Shown in pieces: positions 4,678 to 61,978 of a stretch of DNA of 64,000 nucleotides (the first letter of the stretch is position 1; each line of letters starts with the position of its first letter). Location: the IMG/VR virus record IMGVR_UViG_3300046517_002304, positions 310,001 through 374,000 of that record; one strand, 5' to 3'. The position numbers were made by a program, and so were the translations under genes. The notes beneath the pieces were generated by a model that worked only from the letters and a program-made list of their open reading frames with translations, did no database searches and had not been told where the DNA came from.

Positions 4678-4941
4678 GCTTCTTTCCTCTTTTCATTCTC
4701 CAAGGCTTGTTACCTTGTTCGTTGTTTAATACTTGATGCCCGAAAGGTTTGTTTTCGTCAACAGAGTTAAGATTATAACCACCAGCAAGTGACTCAGCAG
4801 CCTTTAAGGCTATGACTTCGCTACAATAACGCCCTTCACGATCATGCACACCTTCACTGCTAACGGCATATGCATGGTAAATGAATCCATCTGGATCGTT
4901 TGTGCGAATTAATACTTTACCTTTCCACATCAGTTTTTTCC

Positions 4942-13189: not shown

Positions 13190-13756
13190 TCATGACTTAA
13201 AGAACTCAACCAGCGAAGCTTTAACGAATTCATCATTACTTACTTGAACTCCATTAATCCAATATTCTTCTGTACGAGTCCTGGAATCAGGGAGATATAT
13301 TTTTGCAGGTCCGTTAAGGCGATGAAGTTTCCCATTCTGCCACCATGCCGTAAGGCTTTTTGTTTCTACGGCAGGACCACCTATACGGTGAGGTCTTCCA
13401 TGCTGGTACCATTTTTTTTGGAGGATTTCTCCGTCAAGACTCTCTATAAAGGCAGGAGCGCCTGCACAATGCACGCTTCCCGTATCGTCGTAATGTGTTT
13501 CATGAATAAAATCACAGGAATTTCTTATTACTCGCTTCGGCTCACCATTTGAATAAAACCAAGCTTCTTTAAATCTAGTTTTTTTATAAACAACTAGCCC
13601 ATCACAGACCCCGTAAACATTGCCATTTAATTTCCCATACACAATTTCTTCCTTTTTAACTTCTGGTTCAGGGATAACTACCGCTTTAACTTCATTCTTG
13701 CCGAAGAATGAAAGCAAGCCAACGGGAAAAATGCTAAGGAAATTTCTACGCTGCAT
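13190..13756 (-). CDS. Tat-signal HRxDGPA-repeat protein
   Basis: Likely start MQRRNFLSIFPVGLLSFFGKNEVKA; HRIGGPA, LHRLNGPA. Confidence 0.75.
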   Translation of the reverse strand: MQRRNFLSIFPVGLLSFFGKNEVKAVVIPEPEVKKEEIVYGKLNGNVYGVCDGLVVYKKTRFKEAWFYSNGEPKRVIRNSCDFIHETHYDDTGSVHCAGAPAFIESLDGEILQKKWYQHGRPHRIGGPAVETKSLTAWWQNGKLHRLNGPAKIYLPDSRTRTEEYWINGVQVSNDEFVKASLVEFFKS

Positions 13757-14045
13757 TTTTGATTCCCTTAAGACCACAGGCGTCTAAAAGAAGATTGCGA
13801 AGTTCTCTAATGTTCGGATCGTGTTGGCAGTGATTATCGGCCGCTACGACGATTGCCTGTCGTAACTCTTCCGGTATTCCAAGTTTTATACTAATGATAT
13901 ACCAATCACTAAAAGGTTTGTTTTCTAACGATGAAATTGGGCAACAATACTCGTAGTCGCAAGTTCTAATTTTGTTTTCAATTAATGATAATTGCCACTT
14001 TTTATTAGTGGCCTTCAGGGCGGCGATAAATTGTTTGAGGTTCAT
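13746..14045 (-). CDS. MNLKQFIA paralogue family, copy 3
   Basis: Internal Met of ORF 13746..14084 matches the family start. Confidence 0.7.
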   Translation of the reverse strand: MNLKQFIAALKATNKKWQLSLIENKIRTCDYEYCCPISSLENKPFSDWYIISIKLGIPEELRQAIVVAADNHCQHDPNIRELRNLLLDACGLKGIKNAA

Positions 14046-14353
14046 GGTTTTTCGCGTCTCTGAAAATGACCGTTTAAATACCATTCTTTTGTACCGTTTG
14101 CTTGAATTACGGCAGGACCGCCTTTACGGTGAGGCTTACCATGCTTATACCATGCTTGCAAGCCGTCAGAGAAAATTATTGCTGGCCCATCTTCTCTGTG
14201 CAACTCTCCGTCTTCGTCAAACCAGCGTTGAACTCCGTCCTCGTCTACTGAATGAACGATTTTATTTTTTACTTGATGTTCGCTATCCTCAACCGGATGC
14301 TCAAAAGTAAATATCCGAACAGCAAGCAACAAAGAGAAAATGCTCGTTTGCAT
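14042..14353 (-). CDS. HRxDGPA-repeat protein without RR motif
   Basis: LHREDGPA, HRKGGPA; hydrophobic N-terminus. Confidence 0.7.
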   Translation of the reverse strand: MQTSIFSLLLAVRIFTFEHPVEDSEHQVKNKIVHSVDEDGVQRWFDEDGELHREDGPAIIFSDGLQAWYKHGKPHRKGGPAVIQANGTKEWYLNGHFQRREKP

Positions 14354-14380
14354 GTTATCCTCCGAAAAGGATATGGATAA

Positions 14381-15124
14381 CTAAGTTCTCGGACCAAAGT
14401 CGTGAGGGCTGAACATATGCCCGCCTGGACCGTAATCCAAGAGCAGTTGTTCATTATATCGCCTGAGCTTTACCGCATATGCAAGCGGATCTCTAGTTCC
14501 AGTTGCCAATGGGATTCTGTGGTGAATTTTTATTTTTCCATCTTTATCATTATAAAAAATAATATCACCACTATCACACCTAATCTGCGGAATACTCTCA
14601 GCATATGCAATGCAAGGATTAACAGAATGCTCTGATACTGGAACAGCAGGAAGATTATGAACGGCATTCCACCATTCTTCCCGATCCATACATTGACCAT
14701 TTAAAGCATAATAGCAAGTTTTACCGCTCTTCTGAATAACGGCCGGTCCATCTTCTCTGTGTCTAGCCCCATGCTGATAGTAGTGATGGCTATGAGTGCC
14801 ATCAACACATTTAATTATCATGGCCGGATTGTTGTCTCTATGAATAAGTCCATTTTCATCATACCAGCATTCTATAAGCGCTCCCTTTTTATAACGAACA
14901 ATCCCATCCTTAATGCCGATAGTTTCTTTTTCCCCGACAGAGTAAAAAATTCCATCATGGAAGTAAGATGGACTGTCTGCCATGTCGTCGTTTGGATATG
15001 TTGGGATTGGCTCCTCAGTATAAGAATCATCAGGCGATTCTGAGACAGCCGCAACGATAGGCTTAATTAAGCCAACGCTGGCGAACATTGCGGGGATTGC
15101 AGCAAAGAAATTACGTCGCTTCAT
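14381..15124 (-). CDS. Tat-signal HRxDGPA-repeat protein
   Basis: MKRRNFFAAIPAMFASVG...; IHRDNNPA, HREDGPA. Confidence 0.75.
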   Translation of the reverse strand: MKRRNFFAAIPAMFASVGLIKPIVAAVSESPDDSYTEEPIPTYPNDDMADSPSYFHDGIFYSVGEKETIGIKDGIVRYKKGALIECWYDENGLIHRDNNPAMIIKCVDGTHSHHYYQHGARHREDGPAVIQKSGKTCYYALNGQCMDREEWWNAVHNLPAVPVSEHSVNPCIAYAESIPQIRCDSGDIIFYNDKDGKIKIHHRIPLATGTRDPLAYAVKLRRYNEQLLLDYGPGGHMFSPHDFGPRT

Positions 15125-35395: not shown

Positions 35396-36151
35396 CTAAA
35401 CAAAAACCAAACGGCTAATCCAAAAACAATGATACAATAAAACATAAATTCGGGAGAGAATCTTTGTGCAATCCACATTGCGATGATTGAAAGTTTTTTT
35501 AGCATGATTTCGTTCCCAAAATTGAGTCCATTGATCCGTATAAACTCGTTTTAATTCTTCTCTATAAGCTTGAGTTTTAATTTTAAACATCTTAAGATGA
35601 TGGCCAGAACCAATCTTGGCTACAATGCCTTCGGGAATTCTTGTTTTAACCGGATACTTTGACTCAATACTGAACGTTCCATCTTGAACTGATTTAATAA
35701 ATTCTTGATTTAGATTGCCGACATAAACCAATTCCGCTACAGGCATTCCTCCGAATACATCGTGAAACTCTTTCGGGGAAACAAAACCCTTTTTGTGAAC
35801 ATTAACATCAAACATAACCACATCATACTTCTTATCAGGCAGATGACTACCGGCAAAAGAACCATCACCAAAAAACTCTCCATAAACGGTTATACTTTGT
35901 GCTCCACGAAATAGTTTTTCTTTCTTAAAAATACGGTGTAATTCATCTGCATGTTTATTAAGAAATAAGGGAATCGCTGGACCATAAATCGGTTCATTTT
36001 CATCCATAAGACGATGTCTTAAACCAAATTTATAAAAACCATTTCTTGGCGACCATTCATATCTGGTTGAACTACCGTCCATTTTAATCGTCGCGTAGCA
36101 AAAAGCATGCTCGGCCTTAGACGAACCAGCGATAGACGGGTACTCTTTCAC
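35396..36151 (-). CDS. RNA ligase-like nucleotidyltransferase
   Basis: YPSI, motif I KMDGS, YGEFFG, FDV, EGIVAK, FKIK. Confidence 0.7.
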   Translation of the reverse strand: MKEYPSIAGSSKAEHAFCYATIKMDGSSTRYEWSPRNGFYKFGLRHRLMDENEPIYGPAIPLFLNKHADELHRIFKKEKLFRGAQSITVYGEFFGDGSFAGSHLPDKKYDVVMFDVNVHKKGFVSPKEFHDVFGGMPVAELVYVGNLNQEFIKSVQDGTFSIESKYPVKTRIPEGIVAKIGSGHHLKMFKIKTQAYREELKRVYTDQWTQFWERNHAKKTFNHRNVDCTKILSRIYVLLYHCFWISRLVFV

Positions 36152-41313: not shown

Positions 41314-42384
41314 TTAGTTACTCCAGTTAGATGGGACACTACTCTTAACTGCTTCAATCAAAAATGGAGTAGGGTCCAAAAGATTATCTGGCTGATCTTC
41401 ATCTAATCCCCAACTAATGCTCTTAGTGGTTCCGTGAGCATACAGTTCTATATGAAGCATTGATGTAGAATGATACGGAATATCGCTTCTTTTTTTACTA
41501 TCTTTAAGTACTGGTTTAACAAAGCCAATCATTTCGTTCTTCTGAACTACTCGTCCGACCGTAATACCTGGGTTTTCTGTTATTTCACCATAATTGATAA
41601 CACCAGTTGCGCCAGCAACCAACACAGATCGGGTATTATTCCACCATGGCGACCCCGCTTTCTCGCCTGTGAAATCTTCAACGGCAACCACAACGCCTCT
41701 CTCCATAGCAAAAACGTGCGCATCCTTACTGCAATAAAGATCAACTCCAGTATGATGGTCATATTTACGAGCTACACCGAATGCGCCTGGATGTTTGCCT
41801 GTCGGGATAAATTTACTTTTAAGTATAGAGTAATGATATACTGGATATCTCCATACAAAGAATCGCTTAACAGAATCAACAATGTCAGAAATTTCTGTCA
41901 TTCCTCCCACGCCAACATCGCCACAAACCAATTCTTTAAGAACTGGTTGCCAAATGGTCAAATGAGGAACGTGGCGCTGTACGATGCTGATATGCTCCAT
42001 GGTAATAGGATGTTCCCACATTGCGGTATTAGCCGCAGGAGCAAGTACGATAGGCTTAGTGCGGTCCCATGCCCTATAGATACTGGTCAGAAGATTATCG
42101 CAGATACCATTAGCAAATTTAGCCAAGGTATTCATGCTAAGCGGAGCTATAACCAGCACATCCGCTTTTCTTCTAAGATCTATATGGAGTACGCTTTGAT
42201 GAGAATTCCAACAATCCCATTCAGAAGCATCATCAAAAATCGTGCCGAAATATTCAGGCAGAGTAAACCGCTTCGCGGATTCTGTGAAGACAACGTCAAC
42301 ATGGCCAATTTCTGAAAGTTCTCTCTTGATTTTTGGACCAAGAGTTGCTGCCACACTGCCAGTTATGCCAAGGAGGATATTCAT
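41314..42384 (-). CDS. coaC: Phosphopantothenoylcysteine decarboxylase (HFCD flavoprotein) fused to an M23 peptidase-like domain
   Basis: GITGSVAA, HIDL...APLSMNTLAKFANGICDNLLT, PAANTAMW, LVCGDVG; C-terminal HTGVD...MLHIEL...DPTPFL. Confidence 0.85.
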   Translation of the reverse strand: MNILLGITGSVAATLGPKIKRELSEIGHVDVVFTESAKRFTLPEYFGTIFDDASEWDCWNSHQSVLHIDLRRKADVLVIAPLSMNTLAKFANGICDNLLTSIYRAWDRTKPIVLAPAANTAMWEHPITMEHISIVQRHVPHLTIWQPVLKELVCGDVGVGGMTEISDIVDSVKRFFVWRYPVYHYSILKSKFIPTGKHPGAFGVARKYDHHTGVDLYCSKDAHVFAMERGVVVAVEDFTGEKAGSPWWNNTRSVLVAGATGVINYGEITENPGITVGRVVQKNEMIGFVKPVLKDSKKRSDIPYHSTSMLHIELYAHGTTKSISWGLDEDQPDNLLDPTPFLIEAVKSSVPSNWSN

Positions 42385-42386
42385 GA

Positions 42387-43103
42387 TTAGTAGTATCCTT
42401 CAATGATATCAATTAAGCCTGCTGCATTATAAATGGGTAAAGAGTGCTTCAGAAAAAACGGCTCTTTATTCGGCCTAACAACCGTCAAATTATGATTTCC
42501 ACTTTTTATTTCATTAAGGAGATTACCAACACACATATCGGCATTAGTAGATTGGATCTGTTTTTCACAAGCTTCAATCAGATACTTCTGCGAAACATCC
42601 GTCAGAAGTTTAAATCCGACAAGCAATGCAAACGGACACCATTTTTTAACCAGCTTAATAATCTTGGTTGTCTTCTTAAGACTTATAATTAACTCCTCTT
42701 CATTGGAGCTAATCTTCCCATTGGATGGAACGGGCGCATAATCACTGACTGCCGCAGCCAGTATGATTACATCTGGTTCGTATTCGCCACAAGAATATCC
42801 TTTAACCTTATCAAAGTAATCGTTGTAGTCTACGTACTCAACACCATCGTATTGCTTAGAATAGCTGTTATAATTCTCAAGCATTTCATATACATTATCT
42901 TCTGCTTCAATTCCTTTTGTAGCATCAATGCGTTTAGAGAATGGAGTATCGGAGCCTTTGGCATAAATGAAAACAACTTCATGGCCAGCTTTCATAGCGG
43001 CCAGAGCAAGGATAGAGCCAAATCGGCCAGTAGAATTGTTGCCGATATGACGCACATCATCAATGGGCGCTTTGGTGCCACCGGAGGTTATGAGAAATTT
43101 CAT
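42387..43103 (-). CDS. coaB: Phosphopantothenate-cysteine ligase
   Basis: LITSGGTKAPIDDVRHIGNNSTGRFG, AAAVSDY, KISS, LVGFKL. Confidence 0.9.
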   Translation of the reverse strand: MKFLITSGGTKAPIDDVRHIGNNSTGRFGSILALAAMKAGHEVVFIYAKGSDTPFSKRIDATKGIEAEDNVYEMLENYNSYSKQYDGVEYVDYNDYFDKVKGYSCGEYEPDVIILAAAVSDYAPVPSNGKISSNEEELIISLKKTTKIIKLVKKWCPFALLVGFKLLTDVSQKYLIEACEKQIQSTNADMCVGNLLNEIKSGNHNLTVVRPNKEPFFLKHSLPIYNAAGLIDIIEGYY

Positions 43104-45493
43104 GATTTTGGCCTAGCTTTCAGACATGCTTTTACAGCATCAGGACGAACGTAATCATAATGCACAGATTTACCCATTATGTTTTTTGACGGATCAGTAC
43201 CTTCACGATGGCACTCCCAATCCCACAATCGTTCTGATCGCCGACTATAAAAAATTATCCAATGATATGGGGTGTCAACAAATTCTTGTGCTGGACGCAT
43301 GATGCTCTCTTATGGATAACTAAAACCATCCTACTTCTTCGTCTTCTGGTACTTGGAAATGACAAAACTGACTTGGCATACCATTCTTATAAACTTGAAG
43401 CACCATTGCCGCCCATCTATGATAATCTTGGCTGGACTTAAGCCATTTATGGATAGTTTTATAATCCATATTTAGATCGTCATCTTTCGCTTGCTCCAAT
43501 AACTCTATGCATCTATTATACTGATCGATAAAAGCCGGCTTGAAATATTCTCTAGCGGCTTCTATTTCTTCTGGCGTCCAGTTAGGCATTATTTTTTAAT
43601 TTTAATAATCCTTTTTCGGTAATGACAAAATCCCCGCGACAACCACAAGGGCATCCATCAACTAGCCCTCTTTTTATCATAGATTTCATTTTGGCTAAGA
43701 CAAGTTTTCCAGAGGCGTCAACCGGCATTGCATGCGAAACAGAATCGGGAAACTGCATGCCAAACCAATTGTGCCATTTAGTAGGGTTCTTGGCCAAGAA
43801 TTGTAAGATAGGAAGATCAGGAATATCTTTACATTGCATAATAAACCCTACGGATAACTAAATCCCCTTCATTAACAGGCTGGCGTCTTCGCCGCGCTCC
43901 ATTAATTCTTGTCTTACCCCGTTGCGAAATTTAACTCTGGATGGGATTTTAGATTTGATTGGGTATATGGCGGATAGGTAGCCGACAAGTTCATCGGTAT
44001 CGGTTCTTGATATATCAATGTCTGATATGAAATGGTCTAAAGATTCCATGTCATTGCTTTTTATAAAACCGGCAACAAAATTAATAATCTTGCTCGTTTT
44101 AGGACTAACTGCTTTTTTAATGCGTATAAGACTTACACACTGTACAAAGCCTCTAATAATTAAAAAGGAAATAGTTAAGATAAACGTAATGGCACTAGTA
44201 ATTTCCCATGACTTTGTCCATTTATTCAGCGCTAATATCAGTACGCAAATAAATGTTATTAGTACGATCAGATCATCAATCTTGATCTTTTTCATTCTTT
44301 TCTTTGATAAATATAGTTTTTATGCGGATCATATTCCCCGATAACATCATCCCAGTTGTATTTCCAGAACTGAGCGGCCATAACCATAATGTTTAACTTG
44401 GCGTATCCTAATAATGCATAATTAAGATAATTCGTGGTGTTATCTTTTTCCATCAGATTAAGAATATATCCACTAGCCATCCAAAATCGGTGAAGAATAA
44501 AATAAACACTAAGAATGATTAAAAATACCATTTCATTGTCCCAGGTAAAGTTCAGAGGATGGAAAGTAATTCTTAGCGACAGCAAATAAAATCACTATCG
44601 CAATAACAATTAAAACTGCCGGGAAAAGGCAGCAAGACAAATCAGACAGGATAGATTTAATAAGTTTCATTTGAATTTTTTACTTCCAGTTTAAAAGAAC
44701 TCAGCCACATTGGCTCAGATGCAAATTTAAGATAACAAAAATAAAGCAAACACAAAACTTTAAAATTAGAACTATAAAGTATCTGGGTGCTTCCTTTTAT
44801 TGGTGCCCATCCTAGATATTCGGCTGTTACAGAATACATTAGTCTTTATACATGCCTGTTTTTAGATACGTGTGAGTCGGAATATTAGAATCAACCAAAG
44901 TATACATCGTCGGTGGATTACCTTGAAATTCCCCTACTTTGGCCGCATCCCATAAAAGAGACGATGTATCACCGCCAGAGATTTTAACATCAAATTTAAT
45001 GTCGTTTTTCTTGATCAACTCAGTCTTACATCCATGTTTTGCGCATAGCTTCACAAATTCATTCAAGGCATCTTGTAAGGGCATATTATAACGACCGACC
45101 TCAATTGGGTCGGAATTGTGGTGATTGTATGTGTATACTGAAATCATTTAATTATACCATTTATTCCTTGATCGTGACCTGATTGCCGGTAAACGAAAGG
45201 TTAAGGTCTGTAGGAGATTGACCATTTGGATTATAGTGTAATCGCCACGTAAAATCATTTTGTAAATTTGGTTTGTCAAAAAGTTGCTGTGAGCTAAGCT
45301 GACCTATCGCATTAATAATATTTAATTTAAAATCCCTTGCTCTATTGGTAGGATCATCAAAGTAAAAAACTACGCTATCAGCATATCTGGCAACTTGCGT
45401 AACATGAATATTATGAACCCTGCACAATTCCCCGAATAATTGTTCGGCATGACTTAAGTTAGCGCTCATCTTTATCTTTCTTAATGAGAAAAT

Positions 45494-45787
45494 CTATTTC
45501 AATAAGTTTTGAGGAATTTCCATATCAAAACTAAATTGTTCCACTAGCAGTCCTTTGTCAAATGCTAGCGCAAATCGGGCTGCTGTACCTGGTAGAGAAA
45601 GACAAGCTAAAGTACGACCATCAACATCGTCAACTAAGATAGTGGCTACAGCAACCAAAACATGCAAGTTTGGTTTTAGAATACTATTAAGCGCTAATGC
45701 GATAGGACACTTATCACACTTTTTTTGCTCACCATTGCTGATATGCTCATGAGAAACCTTGACATTTGTCATTTTGATAGAACTCAT
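45494..45787 (-). CDS. Hypothetical protein (paralogue of 58722-58988)
   Basis: HIxxG...CPxALA...F...F(D/E) shared. Confidence 0.6.
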   Translation of the reverse strand: MSSIKMTNVKVSHEHISNGEQKKCDKCPIALALNSILKPNLHVLVAVATILVDDVDGRTLACLSLPGTAARFALAFDKGLLVEQFSFDMEIPQNLLK

Positions 45788-45813
45788 TTTTAATCTTTCT
45801 AAAATTTAAGACC

Positions 45814-45860
45814 TAGATGCATCTGCTCAGAAAGGAGGTTTGGATTGCTGTAAGCATCTA
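45814..45860 (-). repeat. CAGCAA-loop hairpin, copy A
   Basis: TAGATGC-TTACAGCAATCCAAA...AT-GCATCTA. Confidence 0.75.
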
Positions 45861-46063
45861 TTGTTTCGTTAGTTAGCCATCTGAATGATGGCTTCTCTTA
45901 ATTCTTTTGCCCTAAGATTAGCTAAATCTCTATCTTCGGCACAAGAACAATCATTTCCCATATCTCTTAGTAATTCTATTACATCATCTGACCTGATGTA
46001 TGCAGAACCACCAATTTCACGCATTCTAAATGTCCAATTGACTAATGGCATGATTCTTTTCCT

Positions 46064-47533
46064 TTACGCCGAAATTTCGGCGTACCTTTCATTGTTAAGA
46101 ACTTCCAGCATAGACTCATACGGAGTCACGGAAATTCCGCCAAGCAAATACTTCAAAATGACTGGCGAACAGCCGCTCACAAGATAAGTTCCACGCTCGT
46201 CCTTCTTCACCGGAACGCCCTTCTCCGGAGTTGCATTCACGTTCCAGAAAACAAGCTTCGGCATTTCATAACCGCTTTGCTCGTACTTCTGCTTAATAAC
46301 TTCAAAATTAGTTTTATCATTATCTCTGCATGCAACATCAAACTGCATGTCGGAAATAATGTAAAGCACATTCGGCATTTGATGCAAAGGAACATTATTC
46401 TCCACCGCAGTAGAGAGAACCACATCAAACACCGCTTGCAGGTTAGTGTTCTGATTCCAGTCAGCACGACGCAAGTTAGCGTCCTTTTCCTTCAACGTCT
46501 TGCCCTTCAACTTCTGCAAAGACGGTCGGTTAGAAAAAGTAATGAAAGCATCCTTGAATGCACCCTGATTGCGCTCCGCAAAGTAGATTGCCAGTGAAGT
46601 GCAAACATCCAAAGGATTTCCGTTCATGCTACCGCTAACGTCAGCGATAACAAGACCATTATGCGGATTATCCTTAAGATAATCAGGAAGCGCCTTCCAC
46701 TGCAACTCTAAGGACCGAGCCTGTTGCTCATCGGAATATCTAATGGCCTTTATAATATCATAAGGATAAAGAGTTCCTGCCTTAATTTCAGCTTCGCCCT
46801 TTTCCACTTTTTCCAAGTATTCGGTATATCTCTCACCGTCATGCTTATGAAATGCCGTTCGGTAAATCATGCTTGCACGACTAGGAACACGCTCATAGTT
46901 AATGGCGTCCCATTTTCCTGCACACATATTCTTCTCAACAATATTAATGCGGGTTCGCAGACCAACCAGCATCTTGCGGTATTCCTTCGCAGAATATCCA
47001 AGGCGATTTGACAGGAAATTCGCCAGTTGAACCGTCTTTTTGCTGCTGGTGTTGTTGGACGGCATCCACTTACCAAGCAACGAAACTTCTCCGCTGCTGG
47101 AAAGGTCGGCATTCAACTGCTTAGAAATAAATTCAAGTACCGCCTGTTCACATGGCGTACCAATCAAACAAAACAAGTCATCCCATCGTCCGAAATGAGG
47201 AATGTGCTTGATGTTTTTAAGAACAGCTTCCTTATGATTATTAGCAAGGAACGTCAAAAGACGACGAACTACATCGCGTTCGCCTTGCCCACCACGAATA
47301 TCGCGGAAGTGAAGCAGACATCGCAATGCTAGAGTATTGTCCTCTGAAAATGCTCTACCGAACAGATGTTCAACACTTTCCCAATTACCTTTTAGGGAAG
47401 AACGACAAGCCGCACCCATCGCATAGAAGTCTAGCAAATCAGACTTCGTAGACTTGAGCGTCTTGGCTCCGTTCGCAGTTTCAGTGGTATTGAGGCTATC
47501 CTCAAGGTTATTTACGAATGTATTTTCGTCCAT
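46064..47533 (-). CDS. DUF2828 family TROVE/Ro60-like protein with C-terminal vWA domain
   Basis: TANGA, RDIRGGQGER, FGRWDDL, GKWMP, INYERVPS, MIDAS DVSGSM, ISDMQFD, VFWNV. Confidence 0.85.
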   Translation of the reverse strand: MDENTFVNNLEDSLNTTETANGAKTLKSTKSDLLDFYAMGAACRSSLKGNWESVEHLFGRAFSEDNTLALRCLLHFRDIRGGQGERDVVRRLLTFLANNHKEAVLKNIKHIPHFGRWDDLFCLIGTPCEQAVLEFISKQLNADLSSSGEVSLLGKWMPSNNTSSKKTVQLANFLSNRLGYSAKEYRKMLVGLRTRINIVEKNMCAGKWDAINYERVPSRASMIYRTAFHKHDGERYTEYLEKVEKGEAEIKAGTLYPYDIIKAIRYSDEQQARSLELQWKALPDYLKDNPHNGLVIADVSGSMNGNPLDVCTSLAIYFAERNQGAFKDAFITFSNRPSLQKLKGKTLKEKDANLRRADWNQNTNLQAVFDVVLSTAVENNVPLHQMPNVLYIISDMQFDVACRDNDKTNFEVIKQKYEQSGYEMPKLVFWNVNATPEKGVPVKKDERGTYLVSGCSPVILKYLLGGISVTPYESMLEVLNNERYAEISA

Positions 47534-47575
47534 CGTATGCCCTTTCTATGTTTTGAGATTTTGTAATATGGGTAA

Positions 47576-47974
47576 CTAAGAATGATGAAGGTTGTTAAAT
47601 TCTTCTTCGGTAATGTGCCTTGTAACTGGATAGGCGTTTACGTAAAGTGGTTGCCCAAGAAAATTTTGGTAGTAAGATTTATACCCTATGCCATTATAAT
47701 ACCATCGTTGAACACCGCCACACGCAGAAGAATAAATAGCAGGCAAATCATCATCACAATGAATTTGGCCTTCTTTGTTAAAATAAGTCTTTTCCACCGA
47801 GCATTTTTGCCAAACTACAATTCCATCACGAACGCAATAAGTCATTTCCCCTCTTTTAAACTTAATAAACTTAGATTTCTTGGCAAGAATCTCTGGCTTA
47901 CTTTCCGCCTTTGCAAATGGCAAGAAAGAAAGCAATCCAGCAGGAATGAATGCAAGGAAATTACGTCGCAGCAT
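47576..47974 (-). CDS. Tat-signal HRxDGPA-family protein (single repeat)
   Basis: MLRRNFLAFIPAGLLSFLPFAKA-E; IHCDDDLPA. Confidence 0.7.
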   Translation of the reverse strand: MLRRNFLAFIPAGLLSFLPFAKAESKPEILAKKSKFIKFKRGEMTYCVRDGIVVWQKCSVEKTYFNKEGQIHCDDDLPAIYSSACGGVQRWYYNGIGYKSYYQNFLGQPLYVNAYPVTRHITEEEFNNLHHS

Positions 47975-47996
47975 TTGATTGTTCCTGAAAATTAAC

Positions 47997-48038
47997 GAGA
48001 TTCATTTTTGCGTAAAGCTTTGTTGCTGTTAGAATCTC
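47997..48038 (-). repeat. CAGCAA-loop hairpin, copy B (directly 3' of the tRNA)
   Basis: GAGATTC-TAACAGCAA...AT-GAATCTC. Confidence 0.65.
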
Positions 48039-48041
48039 AAA

Positions 48042-48116
48042 TGGCTGTGGTCAGATTTGAACTGACGATCTCAAGGTTATGGGCCTCGCGGGGACTCCAG
48101 GCTCCCCCACACAGCG
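48042..48116 (-). tRNA. tRNA-Met(CAT), initiator-like, CCA not encoded
   Basis: Acceptor CGCTGTG/CACAGCC (1:72 mismatch), D arm GGGG/CCCC, anticodon arm CGAGG-CCCATAA-CCTTG, T arm GTCAG-TTCAAAT-CTGAC. Confidence 0.9.
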
Positions 48117-48151
48117 GCATGCTTACTTTTTTTCTAAAAAGTAAGAAAAAT

Positions 48152-48203
48152 CAAGATGCATCTTCTTCACCAATGGAATTTTGGATTGCTGCAAGCACCT
48201 TTG
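48152..48203 (-). repeat. CAGCAA-loop hairpin, copy C
   Basis: AAGGTGC-TTGCAGCAATCCAAAATTCCATTGG...AT-GCATCTT. Confidence 0.75.
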
Positions 48204-48211
48204 TGAACACA

Positions 48212-48240
48212 TATATAGCAAAAAAGTAGAAAAAAGTCAA
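48212..48240 (-). promoter_or_regulatory. Sigma70-like promoter for the hairpin C / tRNA / hairpin B transcript
   Basis: TTGACT-17 nt-TATATA with extended TG. Confidence 0.55.
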
Positions 48241-48242
48241 GA

Positions 48243-48815
48243 CTAAATCGGCGGTCCAGAATTAGCGTAATAGTAACTCAAAGCCGCTTGGTAAGTAGTG
48301 CTCGCATCTTGATAGCGGGCCTGAGCCGTATCATAATCTGGTACAGCGGTGACGGTCCATAGGTCGGTGGCATTGTTAAAGTAAATTACTGCATCAGCAT
48401 ACTGAGGAGTATTCGGATACTGCGGAAACCACAGTCCATTACCGGCAATATAATTTCCATCGCCACGTAATTTATAATACTCTCCGAGATCCCAAAAAGT
48501 ATCTCCGGTTTGAAAATATCCGTTGCCACTAGCGATTAAGTTATTATAAGTAGCCTTCATATCATCCGACCATCTAGTCGGGGCCGATGGCAATGCTGCC
48601 TTATCATTCAAGGCGTCTTGCCAGGCATAACCAGCCTCGCCTCTCGCTGCTGCAACTGCCATTGATGCATTATTTGCAGCAGACAATGCCTGAGTTTGGG
48701 CTGTGGTCGGTTGATTCGGTTGCCCGCCACCCGGAGGACCGCCGCCATACTGAGCAAATGCGCTTGTCTGAGCCAACATCAAAACAACAAACGCCATCAG
48801 TTTTGTTTTCATCAT
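48243..48815 (-). CDS. Secreted Ala/Tyr-rich helical protein
   Basis: Likely start MMKTKLMAFVVLMLAQTSAFA-Q (Sec signal, AFA); resembles 48936-49457. Confidence 0.7.
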   Translation of the reverse strand: MMKTKLMAFVVLMLAQTSAFAQYGGGPPGGGQPNQPTTAQTQALSAANNASMAVAAARGEAGYAWQDALNDKAALPSAPTRWSDDMKATYNNLIASGNGYFQTGDTFWDLGEYYKLRGDGNYIAGNGLWFPQYPNTPQYADAVIYFNNATDLWTVTAVPDYDTAQARYQDASTTYQAALSYYYANSGPPI

Positions 48816-48841
48816 TTTCCTTCTCAGGTTAGAATTTAAAA

Positions 48842-48910
48842 TAAAAAACAAAAGACGCATCCTCTTCGCCAATGGAATTTTGGATTGCTGTAAGCATCTT
48901 TTGTTTTTTA
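48842..48910 (-). repeat. CAGCAA-loop hairpin, copy D (long stem, U-tail)
   Basis: TAAAAAACAAAAGATGC-TTACAGCAATCCAAAATTCCATTGG...AT-GCGTCTTTTGTTTTTTA. Confidence 0.75.
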
Positions 48911-48935
48911 GAAAATCATTTCAAATCTACGGCGA

Positions 48936-49457
48936 TTAGTTATAGCTATAAAAGTACCAAGCGTACCAGTATGCCATATATGCGCTGGTATAATTGCCTT
49001 TAGCTGCTTGCCAGTAGCTTTTAGCATTATTGGTATTATTAACGAAATACCCACTGGCCAAATTAGCGTCCGCTTTACACGCCGCCCAAAGCTGGAAGTT
49101 ATACTCGCTAACGGCTTGGTTGTACCAAGTAAGACCTGAATCGTACTCCGTTCCTGCATCTACATCATTAAAAACGCCGTCTACAACCAGAGAATCTCCC
49201 GTAGCGATATACCCGTTATAGGCATCAATTTGCCACTGCTGCCAACCACTTTTAATTCCCGGAAGACCAGCCTTAAATTCGGTAGCTGCTGTGGCTTCGG
49301 CGGCGGAATCAGCCTCGGCCGTTTCGGCTTGTCCCTTCAAAATTTCAGCGGTAGTTTTTGCAACACCAGCATCGTACTGGTCATCCGCTACTACATAACT
49401 ACACATTCCCAACGCCAAGACTAACGTTGCCAAAACTCCAGCCATTTTGTTCATCAT
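48936..49457 (-). CDS. Secreted Ala/Tyr-rich helical protein
   Basis: AAGGAG SD; MMNKMAGVLATLVLALGMCSYVVA-D signal; YNxxIAxG shared with neighbour. Confidence 0.7.
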   Translation of the reverse strand: MMNKMAGVLATLVLALGMCSYVVADDQYDAGVAKTTAEILKGQAETAEADSAAEATAATEFKAGLPGIKSGWQQWQIDAYNGYIATGDSLVVDGVFNDVDAGTEYDSGLTWYNQAVSEYNFQLWAACKADANLASGYFVNNTNNAKSYWQAAKGNYTSAYMAYWYAWYFYSYN

Positions 49458-49497
49458 CTCAATTCTCCTTGTGAAGTGGGTAAAATTTACGACCGTT

Positions 49498-49526
49498 TTT
49501 ATAACAAAAAAGTAATCGGCTGTCAA
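49498..49526 (-). promoter_or_regulatory. Sigma70-like promoter
   Basis: TTGACA-17 nt-TATAAA with extended TG. Confidence 0.6.
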
Positions 49527-49862
49527 TAAGTCTAGGCAGATTTCTTGGCAGGACTTGAATCGTGCCATTTTATGATGGCTTTGACAGCAGCATTAATCAT
49601 ATCTTTTTTACTACTAAAATCTTTTTCCCAAAACATTCCGATGAAAAGTTTCCCGGGGGAATTCTTTTGAATTACATAGGCATTAAACGGGTTGACATCT
49701 GCTTTGAGCGATTCATGCTCAATGCTACCGATCAAAACGCTGTCGCGGTAAACCTGTTCAATATAAGATGTGCCTTCTTGCGTCCCTTGAACATTAACGG
49801 CTGGCATGGCGTTTTCCTTTGAGGAAAGATGGTTTTCTAACTCGCTTATGGATAACTAAATT

Positions 49863-50465
49863 TTAAACAAAACCTCGCGCCTTGCACGGTGCAATCAATT
49901 CGCGAAATGATTCAAGATCACACACAAAAAACCTATGACCTTTATAAAACCACTGTGTAAACGCCGGAAACTTATCGTCTTCTATTGCAGGCCCATCTTC
50001 ACGATGTCTGTTGCCATTGAAATACCATTCTCTTACTCCACATGGGTCAACAATCGCTGGCCCATCTTCACGATGACATATGCCATTTTTGAGCCACTCT
50101 TTCCTGCCGTCAGAATGAATAACGGCCGGGCCATTATCTCGGTGGCACACTCCATTTTTAAACCATGAACAATAACCGTCACGCCTCATTATTGCAGGCA
50201 AATCACCGTCTCTGTGAATTTGTCCTTTTTTATTATAAAAAGTAATTTCGCCCCTAACGGTGCTTTCTATGGTCTTATAAACCACTCCATCTACCGCACA
50301 TAAAATTAAATCGCCAAGCATAACTGAATCTGGAATAGCAGAAACAGCATCAAGCGCAACATTCATTTCGCCAAATTCAACGTGAGCATCTTCTGCCTTA
50401 ACCTTAAAAGACAGCATGCCAATCAACGCCGAGGGTATAAAGGAAAGTAGAGTTCTTCTCTTCAT
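49863..50465 (-). CDS. Tat-signal HRxDGPA-repeat protein
   Basis: MKRRTLLSFIPSALIGMLSFKVKA-E; four repeats. Confidence 0.75.
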   Translation of the reverse strand: MKRRTLLSFIPSALIGMLSFKVKAEDAHVEFGEMNVALDAVSAIPDSVMLGDLILCAVDGVVYKTIESTVRGEITFYNKKGQIHRDGDLPAIMRRDGYCSWFKNGVCHRDNGPAVIHSDGRKEWLKNGICHREDGPAIVDPCGVREWYFNGNRHREDGPAIEDDKFPAFTQWFYKGHRFFVCDLESFRELIAPCKARGFV

Positions 50466-50892
50466 GATTTTGCTCCTTATGCCACTTCGGCAGATTTTTT
50501 GACGATCTTGTTCTTGCGACCAGACTGCTTGAAACTCTTGGACGCCTTCAACTGTTTTTCAAGTTGCTTGGCAAAAGCAAATACAGACGGAGGCAACTTG
50601 CCGCCTACCGTACTATTCGGATCGTCATAGCCGTCAAAGGCTATGCTCATTAATTCCAGCGCTTCTGGATGATCGGCCAAATCAAGAATTAAATTTGTAA
50701 GTAATTCTGCTTGTTCAGAATTCATTACACAGGTAATGTCAAAGCCAACGCTTACGTTAAATGCAGGAGTTCTCATTTTCTATCCTCTAGTTGCCTTATG
50801 AAGTTTGCGTGAAGTTATGTTAAGATGGGTTATATAAGCACTATGGATAACTAAGAAAATTGATGCATCATAGATGCGACAATTGCTTCATG

Positions 50893-51519
50893 TTACTTAA
50901 CATCTTGCAAATAACGCTGAGTTTCAGCATCAATTCTTCCTTGTCTTGGAGTATTATCTTTATGATCCCATAACCATTTATGAGCAGGAATTCTAAAATC
51001 ATACTGTTCTTCATTTATTCCATATCCATAAAGATACCATGCCCGCCAGCCGGTTGTTGGGCTTGTAATGGCCGGGCCATCTTCACGATGACGCTCGCCG
51101 TTCTGATACCAAAATTCATCGCCACAGCTATAATAATGAGCGGGTCCACCATCACGATGCCTCTCGCCATTTTTATACCACACAAACTCGCCCCATCCAA
51201 ATTCAATAGCCGGACCATCTTCCCTGTGTCGTATTCCGTTAATAAACCATTCTTTGCTACCTTGCCAACCCTCTACCGCCGGACCATCATTTCTGTGAAG
51301 TTCTCCGGAAGAATTATAGTAACGCTTTGTACCGTAACGGTCAGTGCGACAACCACTCCCCCATCCAGGTGGTATTTCAGAATGAGTTAATTTAATAACG
51401 AAATTATCCGCCTTAGTAATTGATTCCGGCGCAACTTCAGTTGCTTTAGTTTCTTTCACAGAGAAGAAACCGGCAAACAGGCCAGCAGGAATTAATCCAA
51501 GGAAATTTCTACGCTTCAT
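50893..51519 (-). CDS. Tat-signal HRxDGPA-repeat protein
   Basis: MKRRNFLGLIPAGLFAGFFSVKETKA-T; four repeats. Confidence 0.75.
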   Translation of the reverse strand: MKRRNFLGLIPAGLFAGFFSVKETKATEVAPESITKADNFVIKLTHSEIPPGWGSGCRTDRYGTKRYYNSSGELHRNDGPAVEGWQGSKEWFINGIRHREDGPAIEFGWGEFVWYKNGERHRDGGPAHYYSCGDEFWYQNGERHREDGPAITSPTTGWRAWYLYGYGINEEQYDFRIPAHKWLWDHKDNTPRQGRIDAETQRYLQDVK

Positions 51520-54219: not shown

Positions 54220-55041
54220 TCAAACCTTATGCACTTTATTTTCGTATAGGTAGTATACAGGAACTGGGAACTTCTGTCTAGACAGAAATTGATGAATTTC
54301 GTCCAAAGCATACCTGATTGAAATATGGTACAGGAACAAAGCATCAATCCTTTTATTTTTAATAACTTCCATTACACCATCAAAAGACGAATGAACATCG
54401 TATTTGATATCGTTTTTGTTTAAAAACGTACATTCATGGCAGAAAATACCACCGTCATACTCACCGTACTTGTCCAACGGAACCGTATCGCCTGAATACG
54501 TAAGCAATCCATGCTTGTAATCATTCGTAATCGGCGTTCCAGACTGCTTAAGTCTAATGATTTCGTCTACAGGAGCACAGCTATATTCTTCCTTTAACTT
54601 TCTGCGAACCTCGAATAACTGAAATCCAAGCGTAAGCGCGCCTTCAATATGCCTGCCTGGGAAACAATATACATATAGGTTTCTTCCTACTTCAACAACC
54701 TGATGTGCATCTACGGCAATCCACTCAATCTGGAATTGCGTATTATTGATTTCCTGCTCAAGATAAACCTTCATCTTAATAACACCCAAACTGCCCTTGG
54801 GATAAATAATTCTAAGAGGCTTATTGTTGTGGCCCTTACCAAATTCTCTTGCGTGAAAGAAACTTGGAAGACCAGATATATGATCTAAGTGACCATGAGA
54901 CAGCAGAATCGTTTCAACAGCGAAAATGCGTTCTTTAAGATTAAATGCGCACCCTTCGCCGCAATCAAAGAGGATACGGCTTGGCTGATGAAAAAGCCAC
55001 GTAGCATAGCCAGCCAATGAGCAACCTTCAAGATTCAGCAT
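54220..55041 (-). CDS. rnz: RNase Z-like metallo-beta-lactamase fold hydrolase
   Basis: FDCGEG, SHGHLDH, YSGDT, HECTF, HSS, HISIRY. Confidence 0.8.
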   Translation of the reverse strand: MLNLEGCSLAGYATWLFHQPSRILFDCGEGCAFNLKERIFAVETILLSHGHLDHISGLPSFFHAREFGKGHNNKPLRIIYPKGSLGVIKMKVYLEQEINNTQFQIEWIAVDAHQVVEVGRNLYVYCFPGRHIEGALTLGFQLFEVRRKLKEEYSCAPVDEIIRLKQSGTPITNDYKHGLLTYSGDTVPLDKYGEYDGGIFCHECTFLNKNDIKYDVHSSFDGVMEVIKNKRIDALFLYHISIRYALDEIHQFLSRQKFPVPVYYLYENKVHKV

Positions 55042-55988
55042 TTGTTTTTATGGATAACTATTTTGTTAGTTTTTAAATCCATGCTCATTAAGGATGTGCA
55101 TGGACCAACTATTTTCACTTTAGGATTATATACAATGCCTTTGCATTGTGTATATAAAAGCTTATCGTTCTCCCAATATTCCTTAACACCATTACTCCAC
55201 TCTACTGCCGGACCACCCACTCTATGCTGCAATCCATGTTTATGCCATGCCTTATATCCGCCCCTCATAATTACGGCAGGGCCGTCTTCTCGGTGTAAAT
55301 TACCATGAAAATACCATTCTTTCGTTCCATTGGTGTATTCGCAAGCCGGACCGGCTGCTCTATGTGGTTTATTATTAAAATACCAAATATTAGTTCCGTT
55401 TTCTTCCTCAATCGCCGGACCATCCTCACGATGAAGCATTCCGAGCTGCATCCACCTTTTTTGTCCGGATGCATATATTATGGCTGGACCTCCTATCCGA
55501 TGACACTGCCCATGATTCATCCAAGTAGTAGAAGATGGATTGATACGAGCAGGCCCATCTTCCCGATGGTATCTGCCATCTTCATCAAACCAAGACTCTT
55601 CATCATAATGTCCGCTTAACTTAAAATACCTTTTCTTTCCATTTATAAAACCGATTTTAATATCTTGACGACTTGAATCAGAATATTCTACATACTCCAT
55701 ATATTCTTTTTGTTCAGGCAATCCAAGCTTCTCTACATTAATGCCGCAAGTATAGATGAAATTTATAAGTTTATTTCTAAAGAAAGCCGAATCCTTAATA
55801 TCAAACTGTTCTTCGGCAGATTTCATAAACTCTTCATCGCACTCCTGTTTTTGAGTAAAAGCATAAACATTCTTAATATAAGAAATATAAAGCTTATCCT
55901 TCTTCGTGAAAGATTCCTTATCCACTCCTGTAGAAAGGAATGAAAGAAAGCCGGTCGGCAACAGTGAGAGGAAACTTCTTCGTAGCAT
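55035..55988 (-). CDS. Tat-signal HRxDGPA-repeat protein (six repeats)
   Basis: Likely start MLRRSFLSLLPTGFLSFL; HREDGPA/HRIGGPA/HRAAGPA/HRVGGPA. Confidence 0.75.
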   Translation of the reverse strand: MLRRSFLSLLPTGFLSFLSTGVDKESFTKKDKLYISYIKNVYAFTQKQECDEEFMKSAEEQFDIKDSAFFRNKLINFIYTCGINVEKLGLPEQKEYMEYVEYSDSSRQDIKIGFINGKKRYFKLSGHYDEESWFDEDGRYHREDGPARINPSSTTWMNHGQCHRIGGPAIIYASGQKRWMQLGMLHREDGPAIEEENGTNIWYFNNKPHRAAGPACEYTNGTKEWYFHGNLHREDGPAVIMRGGYKAWHKHGLQHRVGGPAVEWSNGVKEYWENDKLLYTQCKGIVYNPKVKIVGPCTSLMSMDLKTNKIVIHKNKC

Positions 55989-56159: not shown

Positions 56160-57059
56160 TCATGCGGGGACTTCGCTGGTTTTTCTTTTTAACAAAGCAT
56201 GAAACAAAAAAGCCGTCCTATTACTAATAGACTTTCTTGCTTCCTTGCTCATAACAATTTCGCCTTCGGCCTCCCTGGATACATCTTCCAACATAGCTTT
56301 GACTACATCTGCTGTTCCAGAAACCCCTATATCCTGGGGCAGCTTATCAAGCACATGACGCAATCTTTCCTCTACTACCCATTCTTCCGCTATAGCTCTT
56401 GCGTCATCAAGAACTTGAACATCGGCATCATTTACTTCACGAGGAGTTTTAGTTTCCATAAACTCTTTGCGCTTATGCTTACAAATAATTCTACCGCCAT
56501 TATTAAGAGTGCATTCCACGATGGGTCGTAAGACAACTCCCTCTCTGATATGATTGTCTCCCATGCCATTTTTAATAGCCTGAGTAGACGGCCTATCGCG
56601 TTCCGCGTCTATAGCTTCAAGAGTAGCCGGAATCTTCGCATAATCAACAAAATCTAATCCTAGTTTGCTACAAACATCATGAGCGTTAACAACAGACAGC
56701 CAAACTTCATCGTGTTGGCCATCGGCAGTGAAGGAAACCTTAACGTCAAATCCAGCAAACCTAAGATGCGGCCCATACCAAGCAGACATGCCCATCAGCT
56801 TTCCGCCATATGCTTCCCCAAAAACAGTACAGTCTCGGTCGGGAAACATTTCCAAAAACTTAGCGAGCAAGGTTGGCTGGTCAAATAATTTTAAGAAATT
56901 AACATGATTCGCACCACCAGAAGAAAAATGAATTTTCTTTTCAGCGAATTTCCAAGATAAATGACTCGAAGTCCCGTGAATTTTTTCGAGTGAAAATAAT
57001 TCCTTAAACATAAGGACGGTTGTGTCCTTATAAAGGTTAGAAATATGCATGAACCCCAT
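56160..57059 (-). CDS. ATP-dependent RNA ligase (Rnl2-like)
   Basis: Motif I EKIHGTS, FGEAYG, FDV, EGVVLRP, KHK...F.E; C-terminal RLRHVLDK helical domain. Confidence 0.8.
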   Translation of the reverse strand: MGFMHISNLYKDTTVLMFKELFSLEKIHGTSSHLSWKFAEKKIHFSSGGANHVNFLKLFDQPTLLAKFLEMFPDRDCTVFGEAYGGKLMGMSAWYGPHLRFAGFDVKVSFTADGQHDEVWLSVVNAHDVCSKLGLDFVDYAKIPATLEAIDAERDRPSTQAIKNGMGDNHIREGVVLRPIVECTLNNGGRIICKHKRKEFMETKTPREVNDADVQVLDDARAIAEEWVVEERLRHVLDKLPQDIGVSGTADVVKAMLEDVSREAEGEIVMSKEARKSISNRTAFLFHALLKRKTSEVPA

Positions 57060-61186: not shown

Positions 61187-61978
61187 TTAACTTATTGAAG
61201 TGCATATGAATTCCCTACGCAATTCTAGAACTACATCTTTGACTTCTTGACCATTGATAATAATTAATTGCTTTCTGAAAAACTCAACTGCTGCACCAAT
61301 CGCTGGCCCTACGCGGTCAATTAATATCTTGTCTAAAATTGAAGACTTAATCTGTTCTTTAATTTGCTCTTTTGCTATACTTGTTTTCGGAATAAACTGC
61401 TCTAAAAAAGTTCTTTCGTTCTTTAATCTTATCAGATTATATCTACCCAAATATTTTCTCGGCACTAATGATGCTTCTCTATTTAAGCCTATATGCTTTT
61501 TCACAACTTCAATAACGACTTCATCTGTAATTGGATGTATATTTTGTTGCTGGCAATCCGATAATATCAACCTAAGTAATCCAAGACAACTCGCCCTATG
61601 CATCATTGCGTCTTGTATTATAATTCTTATCTTTTCTATAAGAGATAAGTCTTTTCCTATACACTCCAATAATTGCCCGCCGAATGATCGTAAATTTTTA
61701 ATATAGTAGCTTAACTTCTCGTCTTCCTCTTCCGCCCTACGTGAGTTACACTTTCTACAAGATAATACTGTTCTAGGCTCCCATGTCGGATTTGGCTTTA
61801 AGCGCTTGGCAAAGTTTAATCTTGAATTCAAGTGGTCAATAGTAGCGTCCTGCTCTTGTCTATTAATTTCTTTTGCGAGACTTGGCCTTAATGTGGTTGG
61901 CTTTTCACACCAATGACAACGCGGATCTAGTCGGTGTAAGCGCTCTAAACGCCTGCGGAGTCGGCGACTTTGGTGCAT
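61187..61978 (-). CDS. HNH endonuclease domain fused to a YqeY/GatB-like helical domain
   Basis: CHWC...ATIDHL...VLSCRKCN; then LLRLILSD...TDEVVIEVVKK...E..FLEQFIPK...GPAIG...NGQEVKDVV. Confidence 0.6.
   Translation of the reverse strand: MHQSRRLRRRLERLHRLDPRCHWCEKPTTLRPSLAKEINRQEQDATIDHLNSRLNFAKRLKPNPTWEPRTVLSCRKCNSRRAEEEDEKLSYYIKNLRSFGGQLLECIGKDLSLIEKIRIIIQDAMMHRASCLGLLRLILSDCQQQNIHPITDEVVIEVVKKHIGLNREASLVPRKYLGRYNLIRLKNERTFLEQFIPKTSIAKEQIKEQIKSSILDKILIDRVGPAIGAAVEFFRKQLIIINGQEVKDVVLELRREFICTSIS

Follow-up and report, generated by a model that had tools for sequence, protein, structure and literature searches.

We have analyzed a window of 64,000 nucleotides (positions 310001-374000) from the 511,233-bp IMG/VR virus genome IMGVR_UViG_3300046517_002304 and found in it four RNA hairpins, A to D, that carry the loop motif CAGCAA around a gene for a DUF2828 protein. 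These hairpins belong to a family that exists in distant phages, with stems that covary, and that is linked to DUF2828 genes by position and strand. The protein itself has, in its predicted structure, the fold of Ro60. Our analysis indicates that the four hairpins, as part of this conserved RNA family that accompanies DUF2828 in phages, are probably minimal Y-RNA-like ligands of a divergent phage Ro60. The hairpins and the gene are the following:

45814-45860, minus strand: hairpin A, stem UAGAUGC/GCAUCUA, 33-nt loop starting UUACAGCAAUCCAAAC
47997-48038, minus strand: hairpin B, the most divergent copy, stem GAGAUUC/GAAUCUC, 28-nt loop starting UAACAGCAAC
48153-48201, minus strand: hairpin C, stem AAGGUGC/GCAUCUU with one G-U pair, loop starting UUGCAGCAAUCCAAA
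48852-48900 (core) and 48846-48906 (extended), minus strand: hairpin D, stem AAGATGC/GCGTCTT, 35-nt loop starting UUACAGCAAUCCAAA and ending GAU
46064-47533, minus strand: gene of the 489-aa (amino acid) protein with DUF2828 and DUF7788 (vWA) domains, PHROG 850 'RNA-binding protein'

The four copies follow a common plan, a 7-bp stem closing a loop of 28-35 nt that opens on its 5' side with U(U/A)(A/G)CAGCAA and ends on its 3' side with AU; in D the core stem lengthens to 13 bp over 48846-48906. When aligned, the loops start with UUACAGCAAUCCAAA in A and D, with UUGCAGCAAUCCAAA in C and with UAACAGCAACAAAG in B. The stretch UURCAGCAAUCCAAA is common to A, C and D, and C and D are about 90% identical throughout. 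A preliminary description of this DNA had recognized four elements with a shared stem-loop plan, and all of them are indeed present on the minus strand, with the stems as it wrote them (TAGATGC/GCATCTA, GAGATTC/GAATCTC, AAGGTGC/GCATCTT and AAGATGC/GCGTCTT) and with the G-U pairs it mentioned, one each in C and D, valid on the minus strand only. Its start for D, 48842, was 10 too low. Folding of the plus strand gave no hairpin for C and a hairpin weaker by 2.9 kcal/mol for D. The copies had been noticed only within this stretch of 3 kb, and the same holds for the complete genome: two covariance models, R1 built from the four window copies only and its refined version R2, match these four copies and nothing else in 511 kb. 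The sequence CAGCAATCCAAA occurs three times in the 511,233 bp, always at the hairpin locus, and a loose scan for stem-NNN-CAGCAA gave 27 hits genome-wide versus 8-24 (mean about 15) in Markov-generated controls, with only the hairpin cluster standing out. All four hairpins are intergenic. A is found 204 nt downstream of the DUF2828 gene (counted from the stop codon) and the other three upstream of it, B at a distance of 464 nt, C at 620 nt and D at 1319 nt.

The DUF2828 family is large: phages account for 710 records, and at 90% identity its proteins form more than 7,000 clusters. Pfam finds in the 489-aa protein DUF2828, DUF7788 and a weak VWA_2 only, with no match to TROVE, and phmmer against the PDB sequences found no Ro60. 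The AlphaFold2 model of the protein (pLDDT 91, pTM 0.89) was compared with the PDB by Foldseek, and the 13 best matches were all Ro60 structures, aligned over the full length (TM 0.47-0.62, E 6.5e-9 to 2.6e-4), among them those of Xenopus, human, Deinococcus Rsr and the Ro60 of Thermus phage phiLo. The MIDAS motif of the vWA domain (DxSxS ... T ... D; residues D298, S300, S302, T363 and D395) is invariant in 41 homologues. As judged from the model, DUF2828 is a divergent Ro60, with a predicted TROVE-like ring of HEAT repeats followed by a vWA domain with its MIDAS, and a homologue by structure only. In many unrelated phages (L148, L149, L151, L153, L154, L157 and L001) the DUF2828 gene has a tRNA cluster as its neighbor on the same strand, and no small protein conserved downstream of DUF2828 was common across phages.

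The link between the hairpins and DUF2828 was examined in DUF2828 loci from distant phages and metagenome contigs. R1 found 25 further matches (E up to 1.5) in 12 of these loci, which come from phages of Listeria, Enterococcus, Bacillus, Synechococcus, Vibrio, Campylobacter, Sinorhizobium and Mycobacterium as well as from metagenome contigs. All 25 are on the strand of the gene and 24 of them are within about 500 nt of the ends of the DUF2828 gene; the remaining one is located at the head of the adjacent tRNA array in a Bacillus phage. Since these flanks make up about 7% of the strand positions in the loci, such clustering cannot be chance. With the refined model R2 the same strand was found in 38 of 38 matches. 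As a control, 847 kb of unrelated viral loci, all with the exact 15-mer of the loop motif, gave only four matches of 17.4 bits or more away from DUF2828. A DUF2828 homologue is carried by 3 of 117 viral contig loci selected by the 15-mer, and most of the other hits are chance. In the same way, an exact-pattern scan of metagenome contigs returned 14 hits, about the level expected by chance, 11 of them from one coding family.

We also looked in the opposite direction, from the hairpin to the gene. The pattern AAGATG-N2-4-CAGCAA-N18-48-CATCTTG matches at least 111 IMG/VR loci, and among the matches listed a DUF2828 homologue was present in the fetched stretch in 41 of 111 loci; in these DUF2828-bearing loci all 48 pattern matches (again among those listed) are on the strand of the gene. 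The enrichment of model hits beside DUF2828 genes, which the preliminary description had set beforehand as the test of its idea, is thus found in both directions. A measure independent of any model points the same way: CAGCAA occurs 1.81 times per kb in the 700-nt gene-strand flanks versus 0.29 per kb elsewhere, a six-fold difference, and it is closed by a perfect 7-bp stem in 35 of 38 cases in the flanks versus 19 of 57 elsewhere (Fisher 5e-9). The stems involved are diverse (AGAUGAU, AGGUGGU, AAGACAC, GAGGCUC, UGGUCAC, AGACCAA and others). In the alignment fitted to the model, pairing holds for 99.5% of the cells and each of the seven pairs has changed on both sides. DUF2828 loci that have no tRNA at all (L142, L144, L146, L147 and L152) still carry the elements. 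A near-copy with GAUGC ... GCGUCUUUU was seen on the minus strand of another contig (L126, 2737-2782), inside the first 25 codons of a long open reading frame (ORF). The other four ORFs of this contig have no match in the 511-kb genome, and the near-copy may be either a chance similarity or a diverged copy.

In the consensus of the family, (U)AAAGAUnn is followed after 1-4 nt by CAGCAA(Y)(M)AAA; next come a variable insert and an A-rich run, and nnAUCUUGU closes the unit. There are large YrlA-like members and minimal members, with one common basal module, and the units of the window are all minimal. Units may be arranged in tandem arrays of 4-5, YrlA-like ones included (L146, L147); L146 has four, the last of which ends 14 nt before the DUF2828 start codon. 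In the second unit of L146 (3749-3866) the same stem and CAGCAA surround a tRNA-like domain with a match of 43 bits to the Rfam family YrlA, and in L147 (3772-3885) they enclose a tRNA-like domain as well, the YrlA matches of the two being in the range of 40-43 bits. Further sub-threshold matches adjoining DUF2828 were detected in mycobacteriophage JoeDirt (L150) and in an Enterococcus phage (L153). Altogether the large units of other phages reach 35-47 bits against YrlA (RF02553), whose gathering threshold is 69 bits. The cmscan alignment of L147 places CAGCAAUG opposite the consensus GGCGAAUG, with a different stem register, so that the two correspond by position and not otherwise. The match of the large units to YrlA is the only one that these elements have in Rfam 15.

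Copies are also found downstream of the DUF2828 gene (L001, L148, L150) and between tRNA genes, far from start codons (L149, L151 and other Ounavirinae). In the Ounavirinae, the Felix O1-like phages, two UUACAGCAA hairpins directly follow the DUF2828 gene in the first gaps of the tRNA cluster, tRNA-Glu/tRNA-Met and tRNA-Met/tRNA-Asn (4729-4799 and 4896-4958 in L151, and the same places in L270-L274). These phages keep the stems and the motif but have different sequences in the middle of the loop, and the outer helix of 2-3 bp covaries, from A-U to G-C in phage mio. Some other RNAs were seen in these loci. In cyanophage B23 the hairpins stand on either side of a 110-nt 'tRNA-OTHER'. Just upstream of the hairpin array and DUF2828 of L147, positions 2607-2809 match class A RNase P RNA with 67 bits (gathering score 100, E about 1e-18) and may be a reduced, phage-encoded RNase P RNA. 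In Listeria phage P100plus (L154, 1459-2010) a ROOL RNA of 86 bits, just under the gathering score, lies between tRNA genes about 1 kb upstream of DUF2828.

Pairs of Ro60 and Y RNA are already known in phages, namely the YrlA of mycobacteriophages and Yrl1 and Yrl2 of phiLo. Upstream of its own gene the Ro60 of phiLo has the hairpins that it binds, each with a stem bordering a bulge that contains CGAA, and mutation of CGAA lowers the binding three- to four-fold (NAR 2025, PMC12135203). Like the hairpins described here, Yrl1 and Yrl2 (PDB 9KOP, 9L5Y) are small phage-encoded hairpins adjoining a phage Ro60 gene, with a terminal stem, a large bulge or loop, a short purine-rich motif that comes just behind the 5' strand (in Yrl2 CGAA, at nt 8-11) and one or two hairpins in each RNA. 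The motif itself is different, CGAA there and CAGCAA after a 7-bp stem and 1-4 nt here, and so is the number of copies, which in DUF2828 loci is up to 4-5, often in tRNA clusters. In structure the phiLo Ro60 is one of the closest proteins to that of the window; by sequence the latter, a DUF2828/DUF7788 protein, matches no Ro60 of the PDB. Binding was demonstrated for phiLo, whereas the pairing in the window is proposed from sequence and predicted structure.

Bacterial Y RNAs have their genes on the strand of rsr and not more than 4 kb away from it, and YrlA has the motif GNCGAAN0-1G near its 5' end (PMC4201824). The survey that described them began from TROVE-annotated proteins (Chen et al. 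2014, PMC4201824). The window resembles the YrlA/YrlB (RF02553) loci in having several RNAs on the same strand within 4 kb of a Ro60 orthologue, and the units of L146, L147, L150 and L153, which match RF02553 below threshold, resemble the class with a tRNA-like domain; the hairpins of the window, unlike YrlA, have neither that domain nor GNCGAAN0-1G nor an Rfam match. With the Y RNAs of metazoans and Deinococcus the common points are a ring-shaped Ro60 with small RNAs, in which the terminal stem contains the binding site and the loop recruits or gates partners. The differences are the length (80-130 nt versus about 50 nt), the binding sequence, there a GGUCCGA bulged helix, and the organism. 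A Ro60-like protein of a Felix O1-like phage, Bas63 gp130, is encoded directly upstream of tRNAs and is reported to counter the Ppl defence; the authors guessed that some 'tRNAs' were Y RNAs and the partner RNA was not identified (preprint 10.1101/2024.10.10.617714). The position of gp130 is that of DUF2828 in REP7 and other Ounavirinae, a link to DUF2828 by synteny only, and unlike in that report conserved UUACAGCAA hairpins are identified here between the first tRNA genes of Ounavirinae. TROVE proteins have also been noted among the RNA-repair genes of jumbo phages (Aravind group, PMC7824862). As far as Rfam 15 and the literature searched go, the CAGCAA family, its minimal tandem or inter-tRNA form and its tie to DUF2828 appear to be undescribed.

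Several observations weigh against taking the hairpins for Y-RNA-like ligands. They are thermodynamically unremarkable, with folding z-scores of about 0 for A and C, -2.2 for B and -3.1 for D; given these ordinary folding energies, the evidence for the hairpins is conservation and not stability. Rfam 15, checked for a prior description as had been proposed beforehand, has no family that matches the window hairpins, and YrlA gave no match in 45700-49000 at E up to 1. Their loops of 28-35 nt lack the T arm and D arm of a tRNA-like domain, and the GNCGAAN0-1G motif of YrlA is absent, with CAGCAA in its stead. The pair counts of the covariation alignment (A5), being fitted to the model, lean towards structure. 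Megablast of the phage collection found no close relatives of the 511-kb phage, and the nearest DUF2828 homologue is 55% identical; for this reason covariation and comparison were drawn from the DUF2828 loci of distant phages. Finally, the copies are dispersed in the 511-kb genome and three of them stand 22-34 nt before start codons, which fits a role in cis too. This last point leads to the serious rival, that the hairpins are operators in 5' untranslated regions to which the DUF2828 protein or another factor binds, forming a small autoregulated regulon with no free small RNAs. The distance from the hairpin to the next start codon is 26 nt for A (ATG at 45787), 22 nt for B (47974) and 34 nt for D (48815). 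In several phages one of the copies reaches up to or into the start codon of DUF2828, and in some it coincides with the ribosome-binding site of that gene (L144, 1955-2000 with the start at 2008; L152, 2960-3004 with 2998; L156, 2945-2983 with 2998; L007, 1762-1797 with 1807). The tandem arrays with YrlA-like units, the copies between tRNA genes and those downstream of the gene argue nevertheless for free RNAs over the cis role, and in the window C precedes a tRNA and not an ORF. We consider operators without free RNAs unlikely as the whole explanation. The two roles are mutually compatible and both may hold.

We also disfavour terminators, DNA sites and a leader peptide. That the hairpins are generic intergenic RNA with no tie to DUF2828 (terminators, hairpins for RNase processing or stability, or tRNA-spacer structures) would agree with their intergenic location, with the U-rich tract after D and with the frequent presence of copies within tRNA clusters. 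This is very improbable, as conservation of the loop motif extends across phyla, the elements accompany DUF2828 in the tRNA-free loci as well, the other three tRNA genes of the genome have no hairpin copies nearby, and loops of 28-35 nt are unfit for intrinsic terminators (3-8 nt), none of which was called by the consensus scan at A-D. Even less probable are sites read as double-stranded DNA, operators or phage-specific promoters: the stems are inverted repeats and the elements intergenic, as such sites would be, but half-sites would be conserved whereas the stems covary, the G-U pairs are valid on the transcribed strand only, and the strand bias is strict in all three sets (25/25, 38/38 and, among the matches listed, 48/48). 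A short leader peptide in the frame ATG/GTG-CTT-RCA-GCA-ATC-CAA (MLTAIQ...) might explain the conservation of the 5' loop, and three of the five differences between C and D are synonymous third positions, with ATG to GTG as a fourth. Here we see hardly any chance, because A loses the frame by a 2-nt deletion, B has no start codon and in other phages the stem before CAGCAA is variable and start-codon-free; this small-ORF reading of the loop was rejected by the cross-phage alignment. The original suggestion that the hairpins are candidate RNA ligands or autoregulatory sites, a Y-RNA analogue, is supported by the association with DUF2828, the predicted Ro60 fold and the YrlA-like units.

The putative binding, processing and function that we infer for the hairpins as Y-RNA-like ligands would be as follows. 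By analogy with the Ro60-Y RNA systems, the stem and CAGCAA would form the putative recognition module of the DUF2828 protein, which corresponds by position to GNCGAA in YrlA and CGAA in Yrl1 and Yrl2. Each unit consists of a short basal stem, (N1-4)CAGCAA on the 5' side, a variable insert, an A-rich 3' side of the loop and the return strand (AAGAUnn ... nnAUCUUGU). Where the insert is a tRNA-like domain, as in some phages, the unit is YrlA-like; those of this megaphage are tRNA-less and minimal. The hairpins would be transcribed on the minus strand together with the surrounding genes, and the features around C and B suggest how these two could be released:

48042-48116, minus strand: tRNA-Met(cat), flanked by C and B, 43.9 bits in Rfam
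48122-48145, minus strand: small 10-bp hairpin between C and tRNA-Met
48212-48240, minus strand: sigma-70-like promoter candidate, TTGACT (48240-48235), 17-nt spacer, TATATA (48217-48212)

Because C would be at the start of the transcript and B is 3 nt past the 3' end of the tRNA, processing of the tRNA would release both; RNase P at its 5' end and the 3' tRNA-processing enzymes would free C and B as small RNAs. They are probably released in this way, and tRNA-Met is a likely processing handle for the hairpins. Freeing A and D would take cleavages of another kind, and these two may instead remain in cis. The bracketing of the tRNA by C and B had been described before and stands, while the promoter of their own that went with it amounts to a promoter-like TTGACT-17-TATATA upstream of C. 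This weak candidate was missed by the consensus promoter scan and has no T at the last position of the -10 hexamer; a start there would place the 5' end of the transcript a few nt before C. The 10-bp hairpin is possibly part of the small RNA that contains C. The tRNA-Met is atypical, with C33 in place of the near-universal U33 and a C1xC72 mismatch, and may be initiator-like or non-canonical. It is not especially similar to the tRNA-Met genes near DUF2828 in other phages. That it might be a disguised YrlA was considered and rejected, as the order of its arms is normal and it has no YrlA match.

During infection the resulting ribonucleoproteins would have a part in RNA surveillance, in repair or in counter-defence. 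More broadly, we propose tentatively, giving it somewhat less than an even chance, that CAGCAA hairpins are unrecognized and very widespread minimal phage Y RNAs, dedicated partners of DUF2828 that are produced from tandem arrays or from between tRNA genes and released by the tRNA enzymes, and that the ribonucleoprotein counters Ppl (as in Bas63) or repairs or shields RNA. DUF2828 is common in large phages, including laboratory and applied models; among its carriers are Felix O1-like coliphages and Salmonella phages, P100/A511-like Listeria phages, Enterococcus and Staphylococcus phages, KVP40-like vibriophages, cyanophages and the cluster L mycobacteriophages. The member from a Felix O1-like phage was reported as a counter-defence, with no partner RNA previously known. 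A hairpin of about 50 nt with a six-base motif is a concrete candidate ligand for DUF2828 proteins. If true, the biology of Ro60 and Y RNA would be extended to a branch of proteins that lacks the TROVE label in sequence profiles. The data suggest too that some inter-tRNA spacers of phage tRNA clusters may encode functional small RNAs.

The source record is a single virus with direct terminal repeats, 39% G+C and four tRNA genes, and nearly all the genes of the window are on the minus strand. Identical sequence is present in other soil and rhizosphere metagenome runs, where the hairpins have no variants. In the order of transcription, from right to left, the locus reads secreted-looking paralogue, D, second paralogue, promoter-like site, C, 10-bp hairpin, tRNA-Met, B, 132-aa protein, DUF2828, 60-aa ORF, A and 97-aa ORF. 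The genes not yet listed are:

48936-49568, minus strand: secreted-looking paralogue, first in transcription order, before D
48243-48815, minus strand: second paralogue, between D and the promoter-like site, ATG at 48815
47576-47974, minus strand: gene of a 132-aa protein between B and the DUF2828 gene, ATG at 47974
between the DUF2828 gene and A, minus strand: 60-aa ORF
after A in transcription order, minus strand: 97-aa ORF, ATG at 45787

The sequence TTAGTTATCCATA is a candidate phage-specific promoter. It is found in 35 copies on the minus strand and once on the plus strand within 278-406 kb of the genome, and in the window at, for example, 49847-49859 and 43311-43323 and at about 25 more sites. 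The copies examined end about 10 nt before a start codon, adjoining the ribosome-binding site. Since there is no copy between 43323 and 49859, the four hairpins may share one transcription unit.

Other genes of the window were noted. Two belong to the RNA ligase family (35396-36151 and 56160-57059), one has a metallo-beta-lactamase fold (54220-55041) and one is YqeY-like (61187-61978), which within about 15 kb of the hairpins looks like an RNA-metabolism neighborhood. RNA-ligase genes are near the DUF2828 gene in P100 and XbC2, and about 10 kb off in the window. Paralogous genes made of 23-residue (69-nt) repeats of MORN/YwqK type are found at 13298-14866, 49980-51321 and 55200-55592, and at least five related genes have a similar N-terminal segment that resembles a signal peptide. 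Besides, split CoaBC-like genes are located on the minus strand at 41314-43103, a fusion of Flavoprotein and a weak Peptidase_M23 followed by a separate gene with the DFP domain.

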